Shown here: positions 6,090 to 64,000 of the stretch, one piece after another
Layout: every line of letters starts with the position of its first letter
Position numbering within the stretch: the stretch's first letter is position 1
Origin: Podarcis bocagei
Taxonomy: Eukaryota
Strand: one strand, 5' to 3'
NCBI GenBank assembly: GCA_964188305.1
Contig: OZ076889.1
Length of the DNA: 64,000 bases
The notes under the pieces: generated by a model
The model's database searches: none
What the model was told of the DNA's origin: nothing
The model's input: only the letters and a program-made list of their open reading frames with translations
Program-made: the position numbers and the translations under genes

Positions 6090-6517
6090 TAGAAGCAGGG
6101 AAGTATAGCATTTGAAGGGAACCTGAGGGTCATTTAGTCCAACCCCCTGCAATGCAAGAATCTTAGCTAAAGCATCCATGGCAGATGGCCATTGAACCTC
6201 TGCTTAAACACATCCAATAAAGAAGAGGACACCACCTTCCGATGGAGTTGGTTCCACTGTTGAACAGCTCTTACTGTCAGAGAATTCTTCCTGATGTTTA
6301 GTCTGAATTTCCTTTTTTGTAACTTGAAACCATTGCCTTGAGTCCTACCCCCAAGAGCAGGAGAAAACAAGCTTTCCCCATCTTCCATGTGACAGCCCTT
6401 TAGACATCTGAATATTGTTATCTCCTCTCCTCTTCACTCTCCTCTTATCCAGGCTAAACATACCCAACTCCCTCAATTGTTCCTCATAAAACTTGGTTTC
6501 CAGACGCTTTATCATCT
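6090..6517 (-). mobile_element. CR1 LINE 3' fragment
   Basis: Minus-strand ORF 6167-6388 (GNGFKLQKRKFRLNIRKNSLTVRAVQQWNQL) is the CR1 ORF2 C-terminus. The 3' UTR motif (reverse complement of gggggttggactaaatgacc) is present. Confidence 0.92.
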
Positions 6518-15147: not shown

Positions 15148-15277
15148 GCAAAAAGAAGGCAACACTTTTTGACAGCCAGGCTCCCATCTGCCCCATTTGT
15201 CAGGTCTTGCTTCGCCCGGGTGAGCTGCAGGAACACATGGAGCAGGAAATGGAGAAGTTAACACAGCTCAACATCAG
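15148..15277 (+). CDS. RNF220: RNF220 coding exon (probably exon 3), 130 nt, phase 1 to 2
   Basis: Acceptor ttccattgcAG (15146-47), donor ag|GTAAGG (15278). Encodes GKKKATLFDSQAPICPICQVLLRPGELQEHMEQEMEKLTQLNI(S), recognised as the RNF220 LFDSQAPICPICQVLLRP segment with a CxxC..H motif. Confidence 0.95.
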
Positions 15278-21930: not shown

Positions 21931-22077
21931 CAGTGCTTTTTTTCTGGGGGGAAGCAGGGGTACACACACCCCTAAACATTTTGTGAATCTAAGTTTGGCC
22001 TCATTGAGGGGCAGTATTTCAATATAAGTAGGAAAATGAAAGTACCCCTAAACATTTTTTTAAGGAAAAAAGCACTG
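21931..22077 (+). mobile_element. hAT-like MITE inserted in a CA microsatellite
   Basis: TIRs CAGTGCTTTTTT / AAAAAAGCACTG. Near-identical inverted copy at 57019-57162. Confidence 0.85.
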
Positions 22078-22639: not shown

Positions 22640-23580
22640 ATAAGTCCCATTGTCACATGCCATGCATCAGGGTCACTGCTCTCACCTCTTGGCTCTCCTA
22701 GATTTACGCCCAGTGACATAAACCGGCCAGGCAACGCACTGGTACCTCCAAAGCAACCAACACTCAGGTCTTACAGAGCTTCGAGCGAGGGAGATTAGAG
22801 ACATTTATGAGTGAGGGCCTTTTTTCTTTCACAAAGCTCCATTGAAATACCTAGTAAATCTCTCACCTTAAAAGCAACCTGACAACCAAGCAGAGATCTA
22901 AAGAGACAGTGACTAGCCAGCATTACTCTCAGTGAGAATTAGACCCCGGTGGCCCCCCATCTCCCTCCATTCGCTAACTTTTTTCTCATTAGTTTCCCTT
23001 TGATTCCCCCCACCCATCAGCTTTTTAACATTTCATCCTTTCTTTCTTTCTTCCCTCTTCTCCTCCCCCTCCTTCCCATGGTATCATGGCGACATCTCCA
23101 AGCCAAGTACTTTTAATTTCGCCTGTGGCCCTTGCTGACACCGTGGATATGCACAGCAAGTTAAATTCCCGCCTGATCAATAAAGCAGAAGCCGTGTGTC
23201 CGACCGGTCGATACTTTTTTATCTGTCTTCAGCCCAGTCCTGCTGATGACAGGCCTCTTGCGCATTGCCAAAGACACTCAAGGGCAACCGGGCTTTCAAA
23301 AACACGAGCACTTTAAATATATATATATCATTATTATTATTATTATGTTATTATTATGTTTATAATCCCCTCCAAAAAACCCCCTCTAATATATCCCTAT
23401 AGGAAGACGGAAAGCAGTTCACAGTGTTTGGCCTTTGCTTGAAGCATTTTTATGATTTATCTTAATTTTTAATTGAAAAAAAAACTTGTGAATTAATTGA
23501 TTTCTGGGGCTTGCCAATTAACATTGTAATTGGGTGCATGATAAATTCTGAGGCAGTGTAATTTTTTATTCTTGTCACCA
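22640..23580. promoter_or_regulatory. Candidate long conserved non-coding element
   Basis: About 0.9 kb with no recognisable TE, retained CpGs, and TTTATGA, TGATTTAT, TAATTG, TGACAG motifs. Confidence 0.5.
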
Positions 23581-25204
23581 AGAGGGGCTTGGTGAGGGCA
23601 GCTTTTTTCTGCATGTCTCCTTGCCTAGAATGTACTCTACCTCCAAGGTACCGCCTTGCTTACTGCTAGCAGCTTCTTCAGAAAGAGAGATAAGTAACCT
23701 ATTCAGCTTTGCAAAATGGGATCTCTCAAAGGCATAAATTCATGCCTGGTAGATCTGAAGGAGAGGGCAGTTCCCTCACAAGGTTCTTTTCCTTCTAGTT
23801 TTTCCTTCCCATTCCACAGCATATACCTAATCAATGCTTCCTCCATTCAGTTATGGCTTAGGAAAGTGAAAGTCTTGAGCTGTTGCTCCTGAAGTAGTGT
23901 TGCCCAGTTGCAACCCTGGGAATATGCATATACCTTTGGATCTCCCAGTGCAATAGCAAATGAGGCAGCCACAGCTTATTCCATCCATTCTTTCTCTTTC
24001 TTTGTGCACTTGGAGCCCTGCTTGCCACACAGCTGGTGGGTAGAAGAAGGGGGGCAGAAAGACTATGGCTACAATGTCTCCCACTTCTTGGAGGTGGTGG
24101 GGCTTCAAAATAAATGAATATTTTGCAGGACACAACCTGGCAATGCTATCTAAAAATGAGTTTGGCAATGGAGAGAAATAGAGGTGTTGTCAGGGCCTGG
24201 TCATTATGTTTTGGCAAGGGAATATGCATCACCCTGCTATGTAACATTTGAGTTGGCAGGTGGAGGAGATGCCCAACCTTAAAGTTTAGAGGATACTTCT
24301 GGACCATCACCCAATTGCTCAGGTTAAAGGCCCTTTTCCCAGTCTCATTCATTACCCATTACTCAAAGACCCTGTAGGCAGAACAGAAAGAAGAGGTGAA
24401 GAGGGTATACATAAAGAGGAATGGAGAGTCAGGCCTTTACAAGTTTCAACCAATAGAAGACTCATCAGCTTCTGCATAGTCCAGTGCTATTAGCTGAAAG
24501 GTAAAGGTTACCAGAACACCACTAGCGAGGAGATACGGCACCACAAACCTGTGTGTGGCACAACATCATTGGAGTCCAGCAGAGTCCACAAACTGTGCAT
24601 AGACCAATGCTATCACTAAACCTAATGTGGTTTAGTCTTTGCCTCATCCCTAGTTTATGTTCAGTGCCGATGAAGATGAAGATGATTAATTATTATTATT
24701 AATTTTGTTTAGGAATCATTTAATTTATTAATCATTCCCATATATAAAACAGTTATATACATAAAAATAGTTGACACAATTGCACACATAAAAACAATTT
24801 TATACAAAACAATAATAAATATAAAAAGGGGGTTAAAACAACTGTGTTCACATACATAAGATCAATTCAGGTCGCAACCTGGATAAAGATTTTGGAAGGT
24901 TTGTTGAAAGAGGAACATCTTTATCAGGCATTGAAAAGGCAAAGAGAAGGCTGGGCAACCCAGTCAAATGGGTGGAGTACAAATAATAAAAATATTATTA
25001 AAAATTATTATTACTTGTCTGGTATGCAGTGGGAGGGAGTTCCAAAGGATAGGTGTCACTACACTAAAGGCCTGATTCTGGCATTGTACAGAACAGACCT
25101 CCTGATAGGATTCCCTCTTCTTCATAAAACAGTAATTGGGTATGTAAGGAATGAGACAATATTTTAGGCATCTTGGTATTTGTACACCAATACTAGCACC
25201 TTGA

Positions 25205-25560
25205 GGGATGCGGGTGGCGCTGTGGGTTAAACCACAGATCCTAGGACTTGCTGATCAGAAGAGCAGCGGTTCGAATCCCTGTGACGGGGTGAGCTCCCGT
25301 TGCTCGCTCCCTGCTCCTGCCAACCTAGCAGTTCGAAAGCACGTCAAAGTGCAAGTAGATAAATAGGTACCGCTCCGACGGGAAGGTAAACGGCATTTCC
25401 GTGCGCTGCTCTGGTTTGCCAGAAGTGGCTTAGTCATGCTGGCCACATGACCCGGAAGCTGTACACAGGCTCCCTCGGACAATAAAGCGAGATGAGCGCC
25501 GCAACCCCAGAGTCGGTCACGACTGGACCTAATGGTCAGGGGTCCCTTTACTTTTTTACC
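25205..25560 (+). mobile_element. Full-length young Sauria SINE (Squam1-type)
   Basis: GGGATGCGGGTGGCGCTGTGGGTTAAACC head, GGTTCGAATCCC B box, ...GGGGTCCCTTTAC tail. Perfect 10-bp TSD AGCACCTTGA (25195-204 / 25561-70). Confidence 0.95.
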
Positions 25561-26140: not shown

Positions 26141-26492
26141 GGGAGCAGGTGATGCTGTGGTCTAAACCTCTTGGGCTTGCTGATCAGAAGGTCGGCAGTT
26201 CAAGTCAGCGTGACAGGGTGAGCTCCTGATGCTCTATTGCAGCTCCTGCCAACCTATTTGTTTCGAAAGCATACCAGTGTGAGTACATAAATAGACGAGA
26301 AGGTAAACGGCGTTTCTGTGTGCTCTGGCATTTGTCACAGTGTCCCATTGCACCATGCTGGCCACATGACCCAGAAAGCTGTCTGCGGACAAACTCCGGC
26401 TCCCTTGGCCTGAAGCGAGATGAGCGCTGCACCTAATAGTCAAGTTTGACTGGACTTAACCATCCAGGGGTCCTTTACCTGTACCTTTACTT
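26141..26492 (+). mobile_element. Older Sauria SINE copy
   Basis: Colinear with the 25205 copy, more CpG decay, (ACCTTT)-like tail. Confidence 0.9.
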
Positions 26493-29955: not shown

Positions 29956-32655
29956 CAAAAACAAACCAACAACGAATCCCTGCTTCCTTCATGTTGAGCC
30001 TTCCCATGGAACAGTCACTGATTAAAAGTGACATTTAAAATTTCCGGTTTACTTTTTCACTGCCTCTGTTTATTGCCTCTCCCCCTCCTTCCCGCGCGCG
30101 CGCACACACACACACACACACTTCATATGGTTGAAGCCAGCTCACTGCCCCTATTCTATTGTAGCACCTTTTGCTATTGGATGTCATTGTGTAAGCAGTG
30201 CATTCCAAGGTAAAATGTTGTTATTCCAAAAAGGAATTCTTATCAAGAGGCTTAATTTTAAACGCTTCTAAAACCAATAAGGCAGCCTGCTATTAAGATG
30301 CTGAATGAGGTGTCAAGAGTTTCACTCACTCACTTGGTGTCAGCTGGAGTTAGGAAAGCTCATGACCTCTTTAAAGCAGATGCCTCAGGATAACCCTCAG
30401 ACTGCCCGGTTTTATACTGAATTAGACTAGTGGTCCATTTGGCCCAGTAGTGTCAACTGCTCTTCAGGAAGATCAAGTGGGGCCTCTACAAGTAGAGCCA
30501 TCAGATGTCAGGCAAGACTTGGGAAGGGAGTTCATAGTCATGCATCTCTAGATAGCTGGGACTCTTGTGCCATTGACAATTTAGAACACACTTTTAACTA
30601 GTTTGTAGAAAAGCAATCAAATTAATGTATTTTTTAAACAGCAGAAAATGAGGTCCACTCTAGATTGGAGTACTAAAAACTATATTTATTGCATGAAGGA
30701 GAGCAAGTAAGACGATGACTTATGTGGACCAAGTGGTGATAATAGAAGCAGAAGTTGCAAAGCCCCCCCCCCCGATTAAATATTCAAGAGGATAATATAT
30801 TTTTGAATTATTGTATAACTCCCATTCATTTCCATGTGGTTTCTGTTGGAGAACTTCCCAGCTGACTTGCTCTTTGCCAAATATTAAATTACTCTTTGCA
30901 GTCTGAGTGTTCAGGATCAGTTGTGTTACAAACTCAGTAAAAGTGTGATCCTATGGCTTTGGAATGGCATCCTGGGGGTCATAGGATACAGCAGATCTTC
31001 TCCACCATTGGTGGAGAGGGAGGTCTGCCATCACAGAGGGACCCCAGGATGCTTCCTTATAGTGGTGGCAGAGAGCTGTGTTGTTGGTACTCCAATAACA
31101 GAAAGAACAAGTGTGTGGGTTTCCTGGGCACATTGGGGGAAGCTTTGGATTCAGTGGATCTAAAGCTCCCTACTGGGCATTCCCTTGGAACAGGAAATAA
31201 TGATTTCCCTCCCATTAGAGTCTATGGAGCTTTCCCCACCCTCTGCTGATGTGAGCCCAGCAGGGCTGGGAATCTGGTGTTTCTTCCCCTCCCCAATAGG
31301 ATTGCTTTGTAAATATGTGCTTCTGCTTCATAACAGATGTGTTTGCAACATAGCCAAATACTAACACATATATTTGTGTGTAGAAAGTGGATCAACATGG
31401 AAACAATAATTTTTCTTAGAAATATGCAAAGCCCCAAGAACGAAAATCTTACCCACAAACTCCCCCTTAGCCTCATTAGGGGATGATAGCTATTCCCCAT
31501 CTGTTAATTCCTGCCTCTTTGTGATCTGCTACTACCTAAAAGGGGCAAGTAAGTTGTGCTATCATAATGAACTGGATAAACAATTCCCCAAACAGATTAA
31601 AACTAACTGTAACTTGTAAAGGGTGGGAGGATGGGGGGTATGTAGTAATTATATTTTATTAGCTAGCAAAGCACCATTTTTTGCTTTCAAAGGATAATTC
31701 TATGTAAATCATCTTAATTAGAAGTGTCAGACAAACCTGTGAAGATCATAGTTAGCAAGTAATTTCCTATGTATGGGTTATAATTTAAACCACATGGATC
31801 GCTCGCTGTGTGGCAATATGCTGGCCATGAAATAATGTGGGGAGTGTCGGTTGAGGTTATTACTATGTAAATGTGTGATCATTTCAGACCGCTCCTGACT
31901 TGCTTAGTGATTAAAGAGAATTCTGAGGTCTCCAAAGATTGTGCTCTTTGCAAGGGCCTGGAGCAGAAAACTTTAAAAGGTGCTGGAAAGTGTTTGAACT
32001 TTAAAGGTCGTTATTTCCCTTTTACCATTTTTAATTTGCCACCACTGTTTATGGGAAGGAAGGTTTCTCTTTGCTTATGGCCTCTCACTTTCCCAACCAT
32101 CAGGCTAGCGATTAATGATTTGCTCTCTGGAAGGACTGGACAAGAGAGAGTGTTGCTGCTTTACACAATACATTTACCTATGCACATAACTTACCTGTGT
32201 GTTTAAAAACACGATCTCTGACTTGGTTCTTTAATCCCAGAAGAAAAGGCTGAAATGGAGGCGTCAGCCTGTTCTGGGTTATGTGTTCTTATAATGAAGC
32301 AACAGATATGCAATACTTGTAGGAGGAATGGTCCCTTGGCCTGACCTGGTAAGACTGAAGTGTGACCCACAAAAATCACATTCTAATTCTCTAGATGAAT
32401 TAATCTGGACTAGTTACCGCTAGTTAAATGATCTTCAGCATGTGCTGTTACTACTGAGAGTAGAATCAGAAGCACTTATACTCCTCAAATATTGTCAACT
32501 TTCTTTAACTGTGCTCATCATCTTGAGGCCCTTCTTTGTGTGCTCCCTACACAAGAGGCCTGGAGGGTGGCAACACAGGAACAGGCCTTTTTTTGCGGTG
32601 GCTCCATTTGTGGAGTGCTCCCCACAGGGAGACTCACCTGACACCAGGCAAAAGC

Positions 32656-33203
32656 CACTGTATTCTGCTCTGGTCAGACCACACCTGGAGTACTGTGTCC
32701 AGTTCTGGGCACCACAATTCAAGAAGGACACTGACAAACTGGAACGTGTCCAGAGGAGGGCAACCAAAATGGTCAAAGGCCTGGAAACGATGCCTTATGA
32801 GGAACGGCTAAGGGAGCTGGGCATGTTTAGCCTGGAGAAGAGGAGGTTAAGGGGTGATATGATAGCCATGTTCAAATATATAAAAGGATGTCACATAGAG
32901 GAGGGAGAAAGGTTGTTTTCTGCTGCTCCAGAGAAGCGGACACGGAGCAATGGATCCAAACTACAAGAAAGAAGATTCCACCTAAACATTAGGAAGAACT
33001 TCCTGACAGTAAGAGCTGTTCGACAGTGGAATTTGCTGCCAAGGAGTGTGGTGGAGTCTCCTACTTTGGAGGTCTTTAAGCAGAGGCTTGACAACCATAT
33101 GTCAGGAGTGCTCTGATGGTGTTTCCTGCTTGGCAGGGGGTTGGACTCGATGGCCCTTGTGGTCTCTTCCAACTCTATGATTCTATGATTCTATGATTCT
33201 ATG
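32656..33203 (+). mobile_element. Young 5'-truncated CR1 LINE inserted into an older L2-like remnant
   Basis: Uninterrupted ORF2 C-terminus ([25 protein letters not shown]...[13 protein letters not shown], stop at 33116), (ATTCTATG)n tail, candidate TSD AAAAGC (32650-55 / 33204-09). Confidence 0.96.
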
Positions 33204-37585: not shown

Positions 37586-37771
37586 GAAAGTTGGGTACAG
37601 TGTGGTGGTGATGGTCTTCTGTGTGGAAAGTGAGTTCCTAGTTGTCTGGATCTCATCATAGAGGGCTTTACAGCACCAAACCCCCCAAAAAGGTCTGAAA
37701 AGTCTTACCTTGTAGAATTTATCTGCCCACTTTCAGTATGGTACTGATACTCTTCTTTTCTCTCTTGACAG

Positions 37772-37817
37772 TAAGAACTCTATATTGAAGGATGTCATGG
37801 CTCCAGGTACTCCCAAG
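37772..37817 (+). CDS. RNF220: RNF220 coding exon (probably exon 4), 46 nt, phase 2 to 0
   Basis: Pyrimidine tract tcttcttttctctcttgacAG, donor aag|GTAAGT. Encodes (S)KNSILKDVMAPGTPK, and the phase matches the previous exon (AG+T = Ser). Not in the ORF track. Confidence 0.92.
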
Positions 37818-45169: not shown

Positions 45170-45378
45170 NNNNNNNNNNNNNNNNNNNNNNNNNNNNNNN
45201 NNNNNNNNNNNNNNNNNNNNNNNNNNNNNNNNNNNNNNNNNNNNNNNNNNNNNNNNNNNNNNNNNNNNNNNNNNNNNNNNNNNNNNNNNNNNNNNNNNNN
45301 NNNNNNNNNNNNNNNNNNNNNNNNNNNNNNNNNNNNNNNNNNNNNNNNNNNNNNNNNNNNNNNNNNNNNNNNNNNNNN
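45170..45378. other. Assembly gap (209 N)
   Basis: Run of n characters. Confidence 1.
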
Positions 45379-51131: not shown

Positions 51132-51227
51132 TCAATTTTGTTGTCAGCCTCAATCAAGCGAGAAGGAGACTCTCCAACGGCATCACCTCACTCCTCAGAT
51201 GATATCCATCACTCAGACAGATACCAG
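51132..51227 (+). CDS. RNF220: RNF220 coding exon (probably exon 5), 96 nt, phase 0 to 0
   Basis: Acceptor ctttccccgcttcttccacAG, donor cag|GTGAGA. Encodes SILLSASIKREGDSPTASPHSSDDIHHSDRYQ, matching RNF220 IKREGxSPTASPHSS..HHSDRYQ. Confidence 0.95.
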
Positions 51228-53327: not shown

Positions 53328-56300
53328 AGCAACAACAGAGCTGTCCTGTCCAAGCTTTCTAAAATTCCTTACAAAATAACCACATGAACCACAGCCATAC
53401 ATCTAGAGCTGTCAGAACTGGGCCATGGGTTGTGGTCTGGAGTTGGGAACATGGACCCAAGGGAAGTGAGGAGGCAGGGTCAGAGAATAAAGACTTAATA
53501 GCAATTAGTACCAGAGGTGAAATCAGAAGACAGGACTCAGGAACATAGAGTAATAAGGATCAGAGGACAAAAAAACCAACGCACAGCCAGTAGGAGTCAG
53601 GACCATAGTAAAATCAGGATTAGAGGGTAAACCAGAAGGCAGAACTGGGGTATCTCCACATGACCTGTTTATTGAACATTCATCCTTGTTTTACTCTAAG
53701 GTGCTACTGGGAGGATTTTTTTTATTTTATTTCATCCTGGTTTGTTTGCATTGATATATGGCTTCCTGTCAATCATTTCCAACACTTTCTAGTGTATTGC
53801 CTCATCACTTTTCGCACCACCAAAAGTCCTTTTTCTAAAGTGGGGTTGTTGTGCAAGAGCACCAGAATGCTTTGATCTACTTTAATTGTGCAAACCTAAA
53901 TTAGCTGGTATGCATTTGAATCTCTCCCGCAAAATACTAACAGTCTGGAATGGATCTTAGTAGAACAAGCAAAGTTCTACTGAGACAAGAAGCCCTCTTG
54001 TTTTCCTTCCTGCCCAGGCTTGAATAGTCATTCCGGAAGGTACCTGCCCAAGAAGTTGTAGTGATTTTGCTTGCCACATGGGGTAATTAATGGTCAACAG
54101 TTCCTGAAATATGTATTTTGATCTAATTGGATACAAATGTAATATGGTAAAGCAAGGGAAAATTCAGTAGGAACAGAATTAGGAAGTGAAGCATTATTAT
54201 AAGAGCTGAAAGGTTGATCAGAAAACTAGGATCTAGTCCAAGTTATAATTTGGCAGCCAAAATTAGTTGCTAGCTCTCTCCTACTTGGCTGTTTGGCACC
54301 TATACTGCATTTTTCTGTGTTCTTATAGAAAAGGGGAGAAATGTTTTAAGTTAACCGTGTTGTCCCACATGCGTTTGATTTAAACTAGAGTTACAGAAAG
54401 GCTACTACAAATATTGTTGTGGAATTATGGTATAAAGAAAAAGAACAGATTATGTTGCAATTGAAACTGTCCCCTCTCCATTTGCAGCTCAGGCCCAGAA
54501 GCCTTGAATTGTTTTCAGAGAGAGCAAGTGAAACTGACAGGAAGTTGTTGGGTTTTTTGAGTGATCATGTTGAGTGAAATAGCAATGGCAGGATGGTTAA
54601 GGAAAAGAGGTGAAAGGAAGCAGAAATGTAGGTAGGTAGGTAAATGAGAGGTTTGAAGTTGCTCTGGCTGCATTAATCTGACATCTCCTGAGTAACACAA
54701 GGAGAACAGTATTGCTTTTTGAAAATGGAATTTTTATGCTGTGTCCTTTCTTCCCAGCTTTCTGCATAAGAATAGGATTAATGACATGACTGTTTCTTGA
54801 CAAAAAGAAAGAACTGTCCCAGTTAAAGAGTATGTTAGCATTCTAACACAGAGAATCAATTTAGGTCAGGTCCTAGAAAATATTGGAGCATTCCTATCTC
54901 TCCTTGTAATAAATGTGAAATGAGGATGCTAAGCACTAGACAGAGTCAGGTTCCAATATTCCAGACCAGGGTTTGGATAGTAAGTAGAGTGGAGCTGCTT
55001 GGTAAAAGTGCAATTTGCCTGAAGAAAAATCCATTAAAAATAGGATTTCACCCTCTCTCTAGGCAGTCAAACTGAGAGGAGGAGCCAATCTCATTCAGTC
55101 CAGGTACATTCTGCCTTTGGCAGAATCAGTAGGCTATAGCTCCTTCTGTAAATGTGCCGGCCCATGTTCCCTCCACCTTCCATAGATATTGCCAGCATGT
55201 ACAGTACTAATCAGGCCATTAAAATATGCTTACATTATCCAGTTTATTACAGAGATTTGTTTTTGCTTTGCACAAGTACACACAATGCCTTTGCTGGTTG
55301 CTGGCTGGTCTTTATATGGGCTGATCTTGTCTTCCAAAGATTCATAATACACACATCCTTTGAAGATGTGCTTAAACAGTAGAGTGAAGGAATTCCCTAT
55401 GGTACTCCCTAAACTCCAAGATACGTTACAGTATTTTGCACCCAGAAATATAAAGACTAGTATATTGTGATGTGCTGCATTCTTGCACTAGTCACTGAGG
55501 GATAGTCCATTGGCAACTCAAGTGCATCAGATAATGTGGATAAAGCTTCTAAAGAAGAGGCTCAGTGTACTAGAACGAAGCTGCCAGCCGAGACTTCACT
55601 TGAAACAATTGCCCTCCTCCTCTCTCCTCAAAACCTCAATAATATGTATTTTACTACTTGTTTTAGCTTACAAACTAATGTCTTAACATCTGTGAAATAT
55701 AAAGCATTTCATTCATATATCAGTTTGTGACAGATGCAAGGCATTCACTGTTTCTTAAAATCAGTGCAGACTTAGCATACAGAGGTGCTAATTAGGAATA
55801 TAAATAGACAGACAGTTGAGATTGCCCAAAATACTTGATTTTTCTTTTCCCCCCTTCAAAATCATGCTGTCTACTTCTGTGCATATTGACCTAAGATATC
55901 TTATCTGCAATTGACCCCAGTGAATTATAATGAATGGAAATGGGAACAGACTACAATAAATAATTAGTAATCTCTCATTTAAGACTGTACAGCTAGTGTC
56001 CCCACCTTGTAGGGGAGCTGTGCAAGAGAGATCAAAATGAGTTAAAAAGTATAAAATAGCAGAGAGATCAGAAGGGTGCAGACCTGTCCCAAATTTCATC
56101 CCTTAAGTTATGTATTTACTGAAAAGAAACATGGAAAAGCCCGGTATATTGAAATAATTCAAAAGCTTAGGAAAAAAGCATTTCGAGAGGCTTACGGTTT
56201 TTAAAGGTTGGGTTTTTTTAAAGCAATTTAGGCCTCAGGATTGCAACACTGTCACACATGTTTGCCTTTAAACACTTGGATAGTCTTTGATGGCTTCAGC

Positions 56301-57018
56301 AGGATTGCTAATAGGATCAAAGTGAATCACTTCCCTTAAGTGTTTGCAGGATGTGGACCCTGGTTGGCAGGATAAAGGCCATTTTATAGATTTATCATTC
56401 TTGCAATCACTGACTGTGACTTTAGAGTCATAAAAGAATAAAATAATGACTGCTTTGTCCAATAACATGTTGTATTTGGTAAGGTTTTATCTTCATTTCA
56501 TCCCTATAGAGAACTTCAGCTCATCACTGCCTTTTGACAGGAAAAGGGAGGAATGCTTATGTTTCTAGGAGTCTACAAGACCTGCACACACCACTTTTTG
56601 TTAGCCCTTTTTATTATACATGCACACAACAGATAAAATACTAAGTATTTCACATAGCTTAATAAAACGCCAGACTTTCCACACATGCCAAGAACAATTT
56701 ACTGGATGTGATTCTTGCAACGTACAGTCATGCCTATAGCATTTCTTAGAAAAGTGGTGCCTCTCAGAATGGAGACAACATCAATTTGTCAAGAGGGGTA
56801 CCTTTATACAGTTGCAGCTTGTGTGCAAGTGTGCACTGCTGGGTTGTTTTTCCTCTGCTTAGCCTCACAACTATTACTGCTGAGGGTTCTTAAGGTTCAA
56901 AGTTACGGAGCTGCTTATACCTGGGAAGTTACTTTATTGGTGCAGGGCACCCAAAAAGGCAGCTTGTCTTCTACAGAAAGTTGGTGTGGGTTCCTGCACT
57001 TTTTGTGATAGAAATAAG

Positions 57019-57162
57019 CCGTGCTTTTTTTTCTTCTAAAAAAATGTTTAGGGGTACCCTCATTTTCCTACTCATATTGAAATACTGCCCCTCAATGAGG
57101 CCAAACTTAGATTCACAAAATGTTTAGGGGTATGCGAACCCCTGCAACCCCCAGAAGAACTG
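57019..57162 (-). mobile_element. hAT-like MITE, inverted relative to the 21931 copy
   Basis: Body is the reverse complement of 21931-22077. Degenerate 8-bp TSD GAAATAAG / GGTATAAG. Confidence 0.85.
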
Positions 57163-57399
57163 GGTATAAGCTTGAACTTTCTGTTTACAAGGGAGACAAT
57201 ATCGGGGTACTTCTGTCCCTGCTAATTGCAGAGTTACCTTTCCAAATTTTGTTAGCTTGAGCGGCTAGCTTGCCATTTTTCTGCTCATTTCTCAAAGTCT
57301 CTGCAAGTTAAATTTCTGCTTGGGGAGCAGAATGCATCTTGTCTGTAGTTGTACAGGAATGTATGTACACGTATGAACACTTAAGACACAGGGAGGCAG

Positions 57400-58200
57400 C
57401 CTTGATGTGACGACAGGGGTGTTGCACGCATTTAGCAGTGTCCCTGTTTCCTTCGCCGACTTGCCGGAGGATTTGCTTGCTTAAAAGAATGTACCTTCCG
57501 TGCTTCTCTTCAAAACACAGACGTCCGCTAAGGGGGCAGATTTTGGGGGAGACGCCGAGCGACGGGAGAGGAAGTGCTGCTTTGTGCCGGGGACGTTTAT
57601 AGCCCAGCGTGGGGATATGGGGAGTGAGCAGTTGCGTCTCGGGCATCCGACTCCTGGTGGTGTTAGAGGAGGGGCTGAGGGAGATCGCATCAAGCTGGGT
57701 GGTATTTGCGGCGCGAAGAAGGAAGCGTGGTAGCAAAAGAAAAAGTCCCGAGTCCCAGACCGCTCTTTGCCGCCCCGTTGCCATGAGAACAGCTTCCTCC
57801 CCCTGAACTCTCACCCCGCGCAGGCGCCTGGTCACATGATCGGAGCTAACATGGCGGCGGCCGCTGTTATGGGGAGCTGATTGCAGGTGCCGGGGCCGTT
57901 GCCTGCATCCGCCCTCATCCCCGGCCATGCAGAGCGAGAGAAGGGAACCCGGTGGTCGAGAAGAGGTGCGAGCGGGGCGCGTCTGAGAGGCCGGAGCGTC
58001 TCTGGGGCCGGAGGCGCTAGGGCAGGAGATGGGGCTTGTTTACATCCGAACGGGGGTTGGGCCATCATCCCTGAGGTGGGAGGGGTCTGCTTATATCCAT
58101 ATCCATAAACTTGGAGGGTGCATTTTTTTTCATTTAAGGACGAGGCATACCCTCCTCCCCTCTTCGGGGCCGTGCAGAACGGCTTTGTTTATCTAAGGAT
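57400..58200 (+). promoter_or_regulatory. Intragenic CpG island / candidate alternative promoter of RNF220
   Basis: Sharp local CpG and GC enrichment in non-repetitive DNA. Motifs: ETS GGAAGTG (57570), X-box-like GTTGCCATGAGAAC (57777-90), NRF1-like GCGCAGGCGC (57818-27), E-box GTCACATGAT (57831-40), YY1 AACATGGCGGC (57848-58). Confidence 0.8.
57851..57886 (+). other. 3' part of a putative alternative first exon with a 9-codon uORF (MAAAAVMGS*) and candidate donor CAG|GTGCCG
   Basis: ATG GCG GCG GCC GCT GTT ATG GGG AGC TGA TTG CAG|GT. Strong Kozak context (aacATGG). 36 nt from ATG to donor gives phase 0. The donor is only moderate in strength. Confidence 0.5.
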
Positions 58201-58724
58201 GACACCGGGTCCCTGGAGGGGAAAGGCCAGGAGGAGGTTGTTTATCTTTGGTATCTAGGAAATAAGGGCAATACAGGTATACTTGTTCATTTGTAGGGAG
58301 ATTAATTTATAGCTAAGCCAAAGCCAGACAGCATGCTGCAGGCTGCTTTTCCCCGTATAGTGGTCTTGTAGGCTGAGGAATTAGAGAGTGGGGAAGTGGT
58401 ATGGAACCTTGCAAGCAGCCTACATTTGGGGTGCTGTGGATATCTATATTTGGACAACAGCCAAGTCAGAGGACATGTGGGTGTATTTGTGTTTGAAGAA
58501 GTTATCTGAGGAAGATTAAATTGTGGTATTGGTTTGAATTGGTAAATATAGGCAACACCCAAAAGGGAAGTTTGTCAGGTAGATGAGAGTGCTGTGGTGG
58601 ATTTTTCTAATCTAATTACCCCATACACTCCCTAAGACTGCTTCTCAGAATGGGGTAAATAACTCTGTGGTTTTCTCACCAGCAAGTTTCTAATGCTTTT
58701 CTGCTCCTGATCTTCTCTTAACAG

Positions 58725-58767
58725 ACCTTCTTGCGAGTGAGGGCAAACAGACAGACCCGGCTGAATG
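58725..58767 (+). CDS. RNF220: RNF220 coding exon (probably exon 6), 43 nt, phase 0 to 1
   Basis: Acceptor tcttctcttaacAG, donor atg|GTGAGT. Encodes TFLRVRANRQTRLN(A), the RNF220 sequence that follows DRYQ. Confidence 0.93.
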
Positions 58768-60361
58768 GTGAGTGCAGCAGAAATCCTGTACCATTTTCCC
58801 CCTTGTTCCAAGATGAAGCCTTTCATTATCTGGGCCTAACAAGTATAATGCTTCCTTTCTTTACAAGATTCCTGAACTAAATATGCCCCAAAGGGTTAAA
58901 GCTTCAAATCAATCATTTGTATTCCTAACACATTTTGTTCCTCTCTGAACCCTGTCTTAAGTTGCTGCCCCTGGGTTACATTTATGTAGGCCTCCCAATG
59001 ACATTGCTTTTCAGGCAGCTTGCAAACATAAAATATAATGTGGTAAAACAACAATTGCAGGAAAATATTGTCAGCAAAGGTAAGAGAGAGAATCATTTAC
59101 TCAGCATTATTAAAAACACACTATCTGGAAGCAGTAGATTACAGTTCAAAACTTTAAATAATCACAGATCTGAAAATACTTGGGATATTTTTTTTAAAAA
59201 GTATTTTACTTGGCATTGAAATGGCCATAAAGAGGTGGCAAGCAGGCCTCTCTGAGGAGGGCATGCCACAATTGGGGTACCACCACTTCTTGTTAAATGG
59301 CCTGATTGATATTGCAAAGGAGAAAATATCAATGCCAAATAGAAGAATTATTTTACTGCTTGCCGTTTTAGAAATAATGATTTTCTTATGGGTGTAATGA
59401 GATTAGTCTTTTTCCCCAATGGCATTGTTTTCACTTGCTTACCTGGTATAATCTCCAGCTGTCAACAATACCTGCTTACAGCTAAAAAATACATACAACT
59501 ATAATTCCTGTTTGTTTCATTTATTACAACTTTTTTTTAATTCCACCTTTCTTTCAACACCCTCCCCCAATGCTGTTTTGAAACAATGTGCAGGATAAAG
59601 GCCTTTAATATCTCACCTGGTTATATGGACCTGATACCTCAGTAATTTGCAACTTGGAGCTGAACCTAACTATTACTACTGTGTATGTAATAGCAGATTC
59701 CATAATTTTTGGTCTTAGGATAGACCTGCCTTCAGAGAAGTAATTAATTCAAGATGTATTTTGTAATTTTTATCCAATAGTACGTAAAACACAGTGTATT
59801 GTCACTAAGCAGGAATAATTTTTCAAATATTTTATATAGTGACCCTTTATTTTAATTGATTCTACTTCCACTGCCAGTGAACAGAAAAACGGTGTACTTT
59901 TATCATCTTTAATTTGGTCAAGAGTAAAGATTATGAAAATTCATCCCTGAAAAATTAAGAGCAACTTTAAATTATCCTGACAGTGCAAGAGGAAATTTTC
60001 CTTGAATTCTTCAATGCCAACAAGATTCAGAGTTGTAACATACTATGTTGGATAAAAGGAGAGAGCTCTTGAATTAATGAGGACTGTGCACTATGTAGTG
60101 AATACACGTGATCTGACTTTCACATACACAACTACAATATATTTCTGCTACTGAATAATTCTGGGATATGATTAATGAATACAATTGCAGTATTCTATTG
60201 ATCATCTTGCAAACATTTCCTTAGGGCACTTGGAGCTATTACTGGAAATGATTATAGCAGAAATGCTAATATTTTTCAAAAGAACATGATCATTTTTGAA
60301 AGCAGACCTAGGTTTTGCCAAATATATTGTATGTTGGCTGTATTTGGACATAATGCTAAAC

Positions 60362-62024: not shown

Positions 62025-62620
62025 CATCTAGTCTAAGGAACTACCCACTAACAATGCCTCTGCCTTATCTGGACTGAGGTTCAGTTTATTGGCTCTCACC
62101 CAGTCCATTACCGAGGCAAGACAACAGTCCAGCACATCCACTGCCACACCTGCAGATATAAAGGAGCAGCAGAGCTGTAAGTCATCATCAGATTGCTGAT
62201 AACGTACTTCAAAACTCTGGATAACCCCAGTCAGCAGTTTCATGCAGATGTTAAAAAGCATAGGGAATAAAATTGAACCCTGAGGAACCCCACACTGAAG
62301 GGTTGAAAGGACATTGTTAAAAGGACATTGTGTGAGGACATTGCTAAAGAGCACTTCCCAAACATCACCCTCTGGAAACAACAATCCAAGTAGGACCAGA
62401 ATCACTGCAAATTGGTGCCACCCACCCCTATCTCGGACAGCTGCTCTAAAAGGATACTATGTGTGATGGTATCGAAAGAAGCTGAGAGATCAAGGAGAAT
62501 TAACAGGAACACATTTCCCCTGCTTTTCTCCTGACAGAGATCATTCAGTGTGACCATAGCAGTTTCTGTGCCAAAACTGGACCTAACCATCATTTGAAAT
62601 GGATCTAGAAAATCAGGTGA
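62025..62620 (-). mobile_element. L2-clade LINE reverse-transcriptase remnant (frameshifted)
   Basis: Peptides TETAMV..LLILLDLSASFDTITHSILL and CGVPQGSILFPMLFNICMK..DDLQL..WVRANKLNLSPDKAE are RT motifs with a decayed YADD. Confidence 0.9.
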
Positions 62621-63124
62621 ATAGGAGGCTTTGCCTGTACTGGATATTGCATAAGATAAAACTTACTTTTATGTTTCTTTTGTTTGTTTCTACTCTCTAT
62701 TCCATGACTTGGTCAAAGGCCGTAGAAGGTCCTTTATGAGAAGCCATGTTAGAAGAGTGCTAGTTTTTTTGGTGGGTTTTTTAAAAAAGTGGGATACAAT
62801 TCTACGCAGATCACAATAGCTGACTCTCTTCATTTTCCTGTGCCTCAAATAATTTAGCAAATAGTGATAGCTGCAAAAGGTGCACCACCTCTTTATTAGC
62901 AGAATCAGAGGTGTTGGAAAGATATGTCTTTGAAAAATCTTTGACCTTGATATTGCTTTCCACTTAGAGTAGTTGTATGCAAAGATGGGTGTTTTAAATT
63001 ACACATATCAAGGGGTGCAACAGCAGATCTTTAAGGATGGGAAGCTTCACATGAGACAGTCCTTCATGTAGCTTGGTTTCAAGCCGTTTAGAGTTTTATA
63101 GGTAACAACCAGCACTTTGAATTA

Positions 63125-64000
63125 CCGTATTTTTCGCCCTATAGGACGTACTTTTTCCCCTCCAAAAATGAAGGGGAAATGTATGTGCATCCTATGGGGC
63201 GAATGCAGGCTTTCGCTGAAGCCTGGAGAGCAAGAGGGGTCGGTGCGCACCGATCCCTCTCGCTCTCCAGGCTTCAGGAAGCTATCCGCAAGCCGTGGGA
63301 GCCCGTGGGAGTTCCTCCCGGGCTCCCACCCTTGCGCAGCGCTGCCTGCACCCCGAAGCCCTGGTACGCTGAGCAGTCGCCCCGGGGCTTCGGGTAGCTC
63401 TGCGCAAGCCACGGGAGGGCTCCCCCGGCTTGCGCAGCGCTGCCTCTTACTTGGAAGCTACCCGAAGCGACTGCTCATCGCGCCGGGGCTTCGAGATAAG
63501 AGGCAGCGTTGCGCAAGCCGCTAAAGGTGCCCGCCGAGTCCCACGGTCACAGGCTTCATCCGCCTGTGATTTTCAGAAGGGTCCCCGCTACGCCGCAGGG
63601 GGAAAGACCCGTTTCTTGCGGAGCTTGTCCAGTTCAGAGGGAGTCCGCCATCACCGGAGGCGCCACCCCGGAAGTCTGCTCAGTGCTGCCTCTTATCCCG
63701 AAGCCCCGGCGAGCTGAGCAGTCGCGCCGGGGCTTCGGGTAGCTCTGCGCAAGCCGCGGGAGGGCTCCCCCGGCTTGCGCAGCGCTGCCTCTTATCCCGA
63801 AGCCCCCACGTGCTCAGCAGTCACGCCGGGGCTTCGGGTAGCTCTGTGGAAGCCGCGGGGGGGCTCCCCCGGCTTGCGCAGTGCTGCCTCTTATCCCGAA
63901 GTCCCGGCGCGCTCAGCAGTCGCGCCGGGGCTTCGGGTAGCTCTGCGCAAGCCGCGGGAGGGCTCCCCCGGCTTGCGCAGCGCTGCCTGTTATCCCGAAG
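63125..64000. mobile_element. Young non-autonomous pogo/mariner-like element with GC-rich internal repeats (runs off the window)
   Basis: TA|CCGTATTTTTCG terminus, subterminal inverted repeat ttcgccctatagga / tcctatggggcgaa, abundant intact CpG. Confidence 0.75.
63685..64000. repeat. 99-bp GC-rich tandem repeat, more than 3 copies
   Basis: Anchor t(c/g)ttatcccg at 63691, 63790, 63889 and 63988. Confidence 0.95.

Follow-up and report, generated by a model that had tools for sequence, protein, structure and literature searches.

A probable internal CpG-island promoter and alternative first exon for a short form of RNF220 in Podarcis bocagei

The CpG island at 57400-58100 of the DNA studied here is best explained as an active, TATA-less alternative promoter inside RNF220, a reading to which we give a probability of roughly 0.88. 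Transcription of the plus strand begins at about 57825-57840, in some samples perhaps further upstream; a YY1 site follows closely on the start, which is itself preceded at short range by an X-box, an NRF1-like site and an E-box. The first exon ends at 57965 and is joined to the 43-nt exon 58725-58767, a splice that bypasses every upstream coding exon, including the one at 15148-15277 that contains CPIC. A 9-codon upstream open reading frame (uORF) precedes the main AUG at 57927, which adds 13 residues in frame with TFLRVRANRQ..., and the mRNA would so encode a short form of RNF220 with a replaced N-terminus. By "the window" we mean the whole stretch that was analysed, 64,000 nucleotides of Podarcis bocagei DNA (GenBank assembly GCA_964188305.1, contig OZ076889.1). 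A preliminary description, made from the letters of this window, had predicted an internal promoter that drives an N-terminally truncated RNF220.

Results

The RNF220 locus and its surroundings

The CpG background of the window, a piece of vertebrate DNA, is low; CR1-type LINE fragments and tRNA-derived SINEs are present, as is a block of 209 N at 45170-45378 (an assembly gap or masked sequence). RNF220 coding exons lie on the plus strand at 15148-15277 (..FDSQAPICPICQVLLRPGELQEHMEQEMEKLTQLNI, the exon that contains CPIC), at ~37770-37817 (SKNSILKDVMAPGTPK) and at 51132-51227. The last of these, the third small coding exon, is a canonical exon of the long form, upstream of the island (SILLSASIKREGDSPTASPHSSDDIHHSDRYQ, followed by gt). 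The 43-nt coding exon at 58725-58767 is as earlier described, with AG and GT flanks around TFLRVRANRQTRLN, and is common to the long and short forms; the RNF220 exons in the window, the new first exon described below aside, encode 14-43 amino acids. No KRRK-type exon is present on the plus strand up to 64000, and the next RNF220 exon therefore lies outside the window. The RING exons are likewise beyond it, and a short form that continues from 58725 would be expected to retain the C-terminal RING.

Two open reading frames, at 32442-33116 (+) and 62028-62405 (-), resemble C-terminal fragments of CR1/LINE reverse transcriptase, and a related piece lies at 6167-6388 (-). Judged by eye, these are intronic retroelement remnants.

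A non-repeat CpG island in the intron before exon 58725-58767

The intron between 51132-51227 and 58725-58767 is 7.5 kb long and hosts the island, which we defined by base composition, self-comparison and motif search. Throughout 57401-58100, in six consecutive 200-nt windows, GC content is 54-68% and the CpG observed/expected ratio is 0.74-0.99. The ratio for the window as a whole is 0.22, and the island retains CpG at four times background, an indirect hint that it may be unmethylated. The usual thresholds for a CpG island (GC above 50% and CpG observed/expected above 0.6 over more than 500 nt) are exceeded here by non-repeat sequence. Motif search of the island yielded no TATA or CCAAT match, self-BLAST of 54000-59999 revealed no second copy of the island in the 64-kb window, and no Rfam match at gathering score was found anywhere in the window, island included.

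The centre of the island is ~0.95 kb and its 3' edge ~0.63 kb upstream of the 58725 exon, in keeping with the distance of ~0.9 kb given in the preliminary description. That description had also called it the only sizeable non-repeat CpG island in the window, and our survey agrees: the remaining CpG-rich patches are 25201-25500, where a tRNA-derived SINE lies (another copy is at 26170), a 99-bp tandem array (63100-64000) and one single 200-nt window (23101-23300). The first of these small patches is explained by a pair of direct copies at 25241-25327 and 26170-26256, which are 78% identical and belong to a tRNA-derived SINE with a B-box-like GGTTCGAATCC. The tandem array occupies 63270-64000 and runs past the window end; its GC content reaches 72%, its CpG observed/expected ratio is 0.8-0.98, and its 99-bp units are preceded by older, diverged copies from ~63270. 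We class it as a CpG-island-like minisatellite; it belongs to the RNF220 intron that follows exon 58725-58767.

Several other identities for the island were considered and rejected. An origin from a transposable element or other repeat was set aside on the self-BLAST result, in which the only element found was a SINE-like one at 57027-57159, outside the island. A structured RNA gene was rejected for want of an Rfam match. A protein gene was rejected as well: the open reading frames at 57308-57928 (-), 57832-58068 (-) and 57881-58108 (+) are of the low-complexity type common in CpG islands, and the minus-strand ones were dismissed because no reads of minus-strand orientation support them. GC skew is positive on both sides of the transcription start and hence uninformative about direction.

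The SINE-like element beside the island is ~134 nt long and has an inverted copy, 91% identical, at 21939-22071. In the RNA runs its summed depths reach the thousands, and nearly all of its reads run on into sequence from elsewhere. The element is thus a dispersed repeat, abundant and carried in many transcripts, and its depth does not reflect local expression.

The island is spliced to RNF220

RNA runs bearing the same species label were placed on 54500-59500. Two were contig runs (X1 and X5) and two were raw stranded RNA-seq (X23 and X24). Reads resembling human sequence in conserved genes were left out of the placement, and the depths reported here do not give a ratio of long to short form. 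A single joint was found, from 57965 to 58725; it is carried by 8 reads with 7 different starts in X23, by 12 reads with 11 starts in X24, and by one X1 contig at a depth of 73.8, that is, by three runs from two studies. It was listed as 57963 to 58723 with a cut of +2, which places it at GAG/GT..AG/ACC. The donor at 57965/57966 reads GAG/GTGCGA, and the intron removed (57966-58724, plus strand) is 759 nt long with GT..AG ends. The upstream exons are skipped in this transcript, as the preliminary description had foreseen. Signal from the first exon is present in three of the four runs and two of the three studies and is absent from X5.

In the raw reads on the joint and the island, the first mate always maps to the minus strand. 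In the usual stranded libraries this arrangement denotes RNA of the plus strand, and the transcript therefore runs in the direction of RNF220. An alternative is that the island serves mainly as the promoter of a separate gene or an antisense RNA, and that its connection to RNF220 is a minor side effect. An X5 contig at 57395-57581 (depth 6) could be read as an upstream divergent transcript in support of this alternative. However, X23 and X24 contain no reads of opposite orientation on the island and none at all in 57172-57672, the sole joint from the island among those listed goes to the RNF220 exon, and the island has neither a convincing open reading frame on either strand nor an Rfam family. 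We consider a separate gene exceedingly improbable. The X5 contig itself, 188 nt long and of a molecule type that is not on record, covers the upstream part of the island and may stem from carried-over DNA or from a promoter-associated transcript further upstream.

The start of the promoter-driven RNF220 transcript can be placed from read depth. In X23 and X24, depth is 0.06-0.19 in the bin 57673-57839 versus ~10 in the bin 57840-58006, and the 5' ends of the transcripts in these runs therefore lie within some tens of bases of 57830. Coverage sets in at about 57825-57840, an estimate drawn from depth in 167-nt bins. The alternative first exon of RNF220 is thus best given as 57830-57965 (+), its 5' end being approximate. 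The preliminary description had proposed, as a test, a search for starts at ~57800-57850 spliced to 58725, and public RNA-seq shows just this pattern in the runs that carry the joint. In X1, a 296-nt contig (depth 31.8) follows the genome without a break from 57679 and stops exactly at 57965, which suggests that this sample has further-upstream starts, as is usual in the dispersed initiation of CpG islands. An unspliced continuation is also seen in X1 (contig 57936-58365), at a depth of 4, whereas the spliced form reaches 74.

An alternative is that the long transcript includes the segment up to 57965 as an internal exon, of cassette or poison type, and that the CpG island is incidental. The long form is indeed present, since an X1 contig joins 58725 to ...TCAGATGATATCCATCACTCAGACAGATAC (encoding ..SDDIHHSDRY), the 3' end of exon 51132-51227, with a loose end before 58722. 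Short-read depth cannot prove a cap, and a junction on the acceptor side could lie among 49 loose ends beyond those listed. Against an internal exon, no joint among those listed enters the segment from anywhere in 54500-57965, and no loose end among those listed falls at its 5' side. Coverage tapers rather than stopping at an AG, and the X1 contig runs colinear with the genome from its first base. An in-frame stop just upstream of AUG 57927 would also truncate any long mRNA that included the segment. Together with the island itself, the position of the YY1 site and the mammalian precedent discussed below, these observations favour initiation, and make an internal exon very unlikely.

Promoter motifs around the start

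Motif expectations were taken from 1000 dinucleotide shuffles of the island, and because the patterns were picked after inspection of the sequence, every expected count given here is optimistic. A candidate X-box of the RFX type, GTTGCCATGAGAAC, lies at 57777-57790 (+); its pattern, GTTGCYNNGRNAAC, has one match in 64 kb and none in the 1000 shuffles (expected <0.001). It is followed at 57818-57827 (+) by a weak and polymorphic NRF1-like site, GCGCAGGCGC, which matches GCGCANGCGC (one match in 64 kb, expected 0.011). Further on, an E-box of USF/TFE-like type, CACATG at 57833, sits within GTCACATGA (57831-57839, +), a longer string expected 0.002 times in the shuffled island. A perfect YY1 motif, AACATGGCGGC, occupies 57848-57858 (+), with one match in 64 kb and an expectation of 0.001. 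The four elements are clustered in that order within 57777-57858. ETS-like AGGAAG occurs at 57569 (+), 57720 (+) and 57793 (-).

The preliminary description had listed ETS, X-box, NRF1, E-box and YY1 motifs in order. The order stands, but the NRF1 site is only degenerate: it is one mismatch off the strict palindrome and fails the strict consensus, YGCGCAYGCGCR. The same description had the YY1 motif oriented as expected just downstream of a plus-strand start, which matches the reads. The motif is on the plus strand, coverage begins ~10-25 nt upstream of it, and it falls at about +10 to +30 from the inferred start.

The allele seen in X1 differs from the reference within this cluster. It has a 9-nt insertion, CCGCTCAGG, after 57815, which resembles the adjacent CCGCGCAGG, and inside the NRF1-like motif it carries two substitutions, C>G and A>C, at positions 57821 and 57822; no difference is listed within the X-box. 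Since this allele, disrupted at the NRF1-like site, is still well transcribed and spliced, the site is probably dispensable.

Coding potential of the new first exon

Local translation across the read-supported junction was used to check the reading frame. The AUG at 57927 (context ccggccATGc) opens 13 isoform-specific codons, MQSERREPGGREE (57927-57965, +), in frame with exon 58725, and the frame stays open across the junction. A stop lies in frame upstream of this AUG. The prediction of an N-terminally truncated RNF220 therefore needs amending: the upstream exons are skipped as proposed, but the product would not be merely truncated. The first exon supplies a start codon and 13 new residues, and the short mRNA would encode an N-terminally replaced RNF220.

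The first exon also holds a uORF, MAAAAVMGS* (57851-57880, +), whose 9 codons begin at an AUG in AACATGG context that overlaps the YY1 site. With donor 57965, the uORF is read in frame -1 with respect to RNF220; AUGs at 57836, 57851 and 57869 share this frame, which ends at TGA 57878-57880. An alternative donor at 57886 (CAG/GTGCCG), with which the frame of AUG 57851 would continue through the UGA into that of RNF220, was considered and is absent among the joints listed.

With the stronger AUG context of the two, the uORF could limit translation of the main frame. Taken further, the promoter and splice may be real and the transcript mainly regulatory or non-productive, the uORF capturing ribosomes so that little or no short protein is made in this species. 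The uORF does come before the main AUG, and an upstream start of the kind suggested by the X1 contig would include further upstream AUGs at 57783 and 57836. On the other hand, the uORF is short and 46 nt separate its end from the main AUG, a layout that favours reinitiation or leaky scanning. The main frame is open into RNF220, and the corresponding 35-kDa protein is found in most mammalian tissues (Choi et al., Mol Cells 2025, PMC12296455). We regard a largely non-productive transcript as unlikely, and translation of the short form as the better expectation.

Discussion

Our data identify an internal promoter of RNF220 that closely parallels one described in mammals. Human RNF220 has alternative transcription starts in "exons 2a or 5a", and a form termed deltaN-RNF220, of 308 amino acids, starts at exon 5a in both human and mouse (PMC12296455). 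This form corresponds to human RNF220 isoform 4 and mouse isoform 3; it is ubiquitous, whereas the long form is brain-restricted in mammals, and in almost every human tissue surveyed the strongest H3K4me3 peak lies at the start of deltaN-RNF220 (PMC12296455). A second start codon, M38 in human, which is conserved and lies with an NLS in the next exon, gives a differently localised product, and chicken and zebrafish forms were included in the published comparison (PMC12296455). The short mammalian isoforms mentioned in the preliminary description are in print, with an alternative start at exon 5a (PMC12296455), and the pairing of a ubiquitous with a restricted form agrees with its proposal of a ubiquitous short ligase beside a developmentally regulated long one. 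As that description also proposed, the two forms may differ in substrate binding.

The likeness to the transcript described here is one of exon position and promoter type. In the window, the exons run 15148-15277, ~37770-37817, 51132-51227, the new first exon, and 58725-58767, so that the new exon falls after "exon 5" and before "exon 6", the position of "exon 5a", if human numbering as inferred from PMC12296455 takes exon 1 as non-coding and exon 2 as the large N-terminal exon. Like deltaN-RNF220, the squamate transcript starts in the intron directly before the TFLRVRANRQ exon, has a first exon that brings an AUG and a short N-terminus not shared with the long form, and skips all of the N-terminal exons. 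Its promoter is likewise of the CpG-island type. The differences are the squamate host and the length of the unique N-terminus, which is 13 residues in Podarcis. We take the human counterpart to be ~18 residues, on the assumption that M38 is the Met of ..RIGKM... The short RNF220 transcript is the squamate counterpart of a published, RefSeq-annotated mammalian isoform, and its biology is already known. By analogy, the squamate form may also be broadly expressed.

The promoter resembles generic housekeeping promoters in part. YY1 sites prefer, and activate from, a position just downstream of the transcription start, and NRF1 sites one upstream of it (Duttke et al., Nature 2024, PMC11269187). 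Like such promoters, the island is TATA-less, has a sense YY1 motif ~10-30 nt past the start, and carries activator-type motifs upstream of the start. Unlike them, its predicted NRF1-like site is off consensus and varies between individuals, and its X-box is not a typical housekeeping element. RNF220 acts on Gli in the ciliogenic/Hedgehog programme. One could envision that the perfect RFX-type X-box, ~45 nt upstream of the start, links deltaN-RNF220 to this programme, and that the ATG of the YY1 motif, which is also the start of the uORF, couples promoter use to translational dampening. This logic is not known to have been described, and we offer it as a doubtful conjecture. If conserved from squamates to mammals, it would be a control module of the "original" RNF220 form that goes back to the ancestral amniotes.

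The promoter was called from sequence and then borne out by reads, and it can serve as a positive control for predictions of this kind. In practical terms, the short form escapes any knock-out or annotation that targets the N-terminal exons of RNF220 alone. Our results reveal no new kind of biology. Rather, an internal promoter and first exon whose function was described in 2025, and only for human and mouse, are also used in a squamate. The shared exon position and the CpG-island/YY1 promoter type lend support to the idea that this short form is an old, conserved product of the RNF220 locus.
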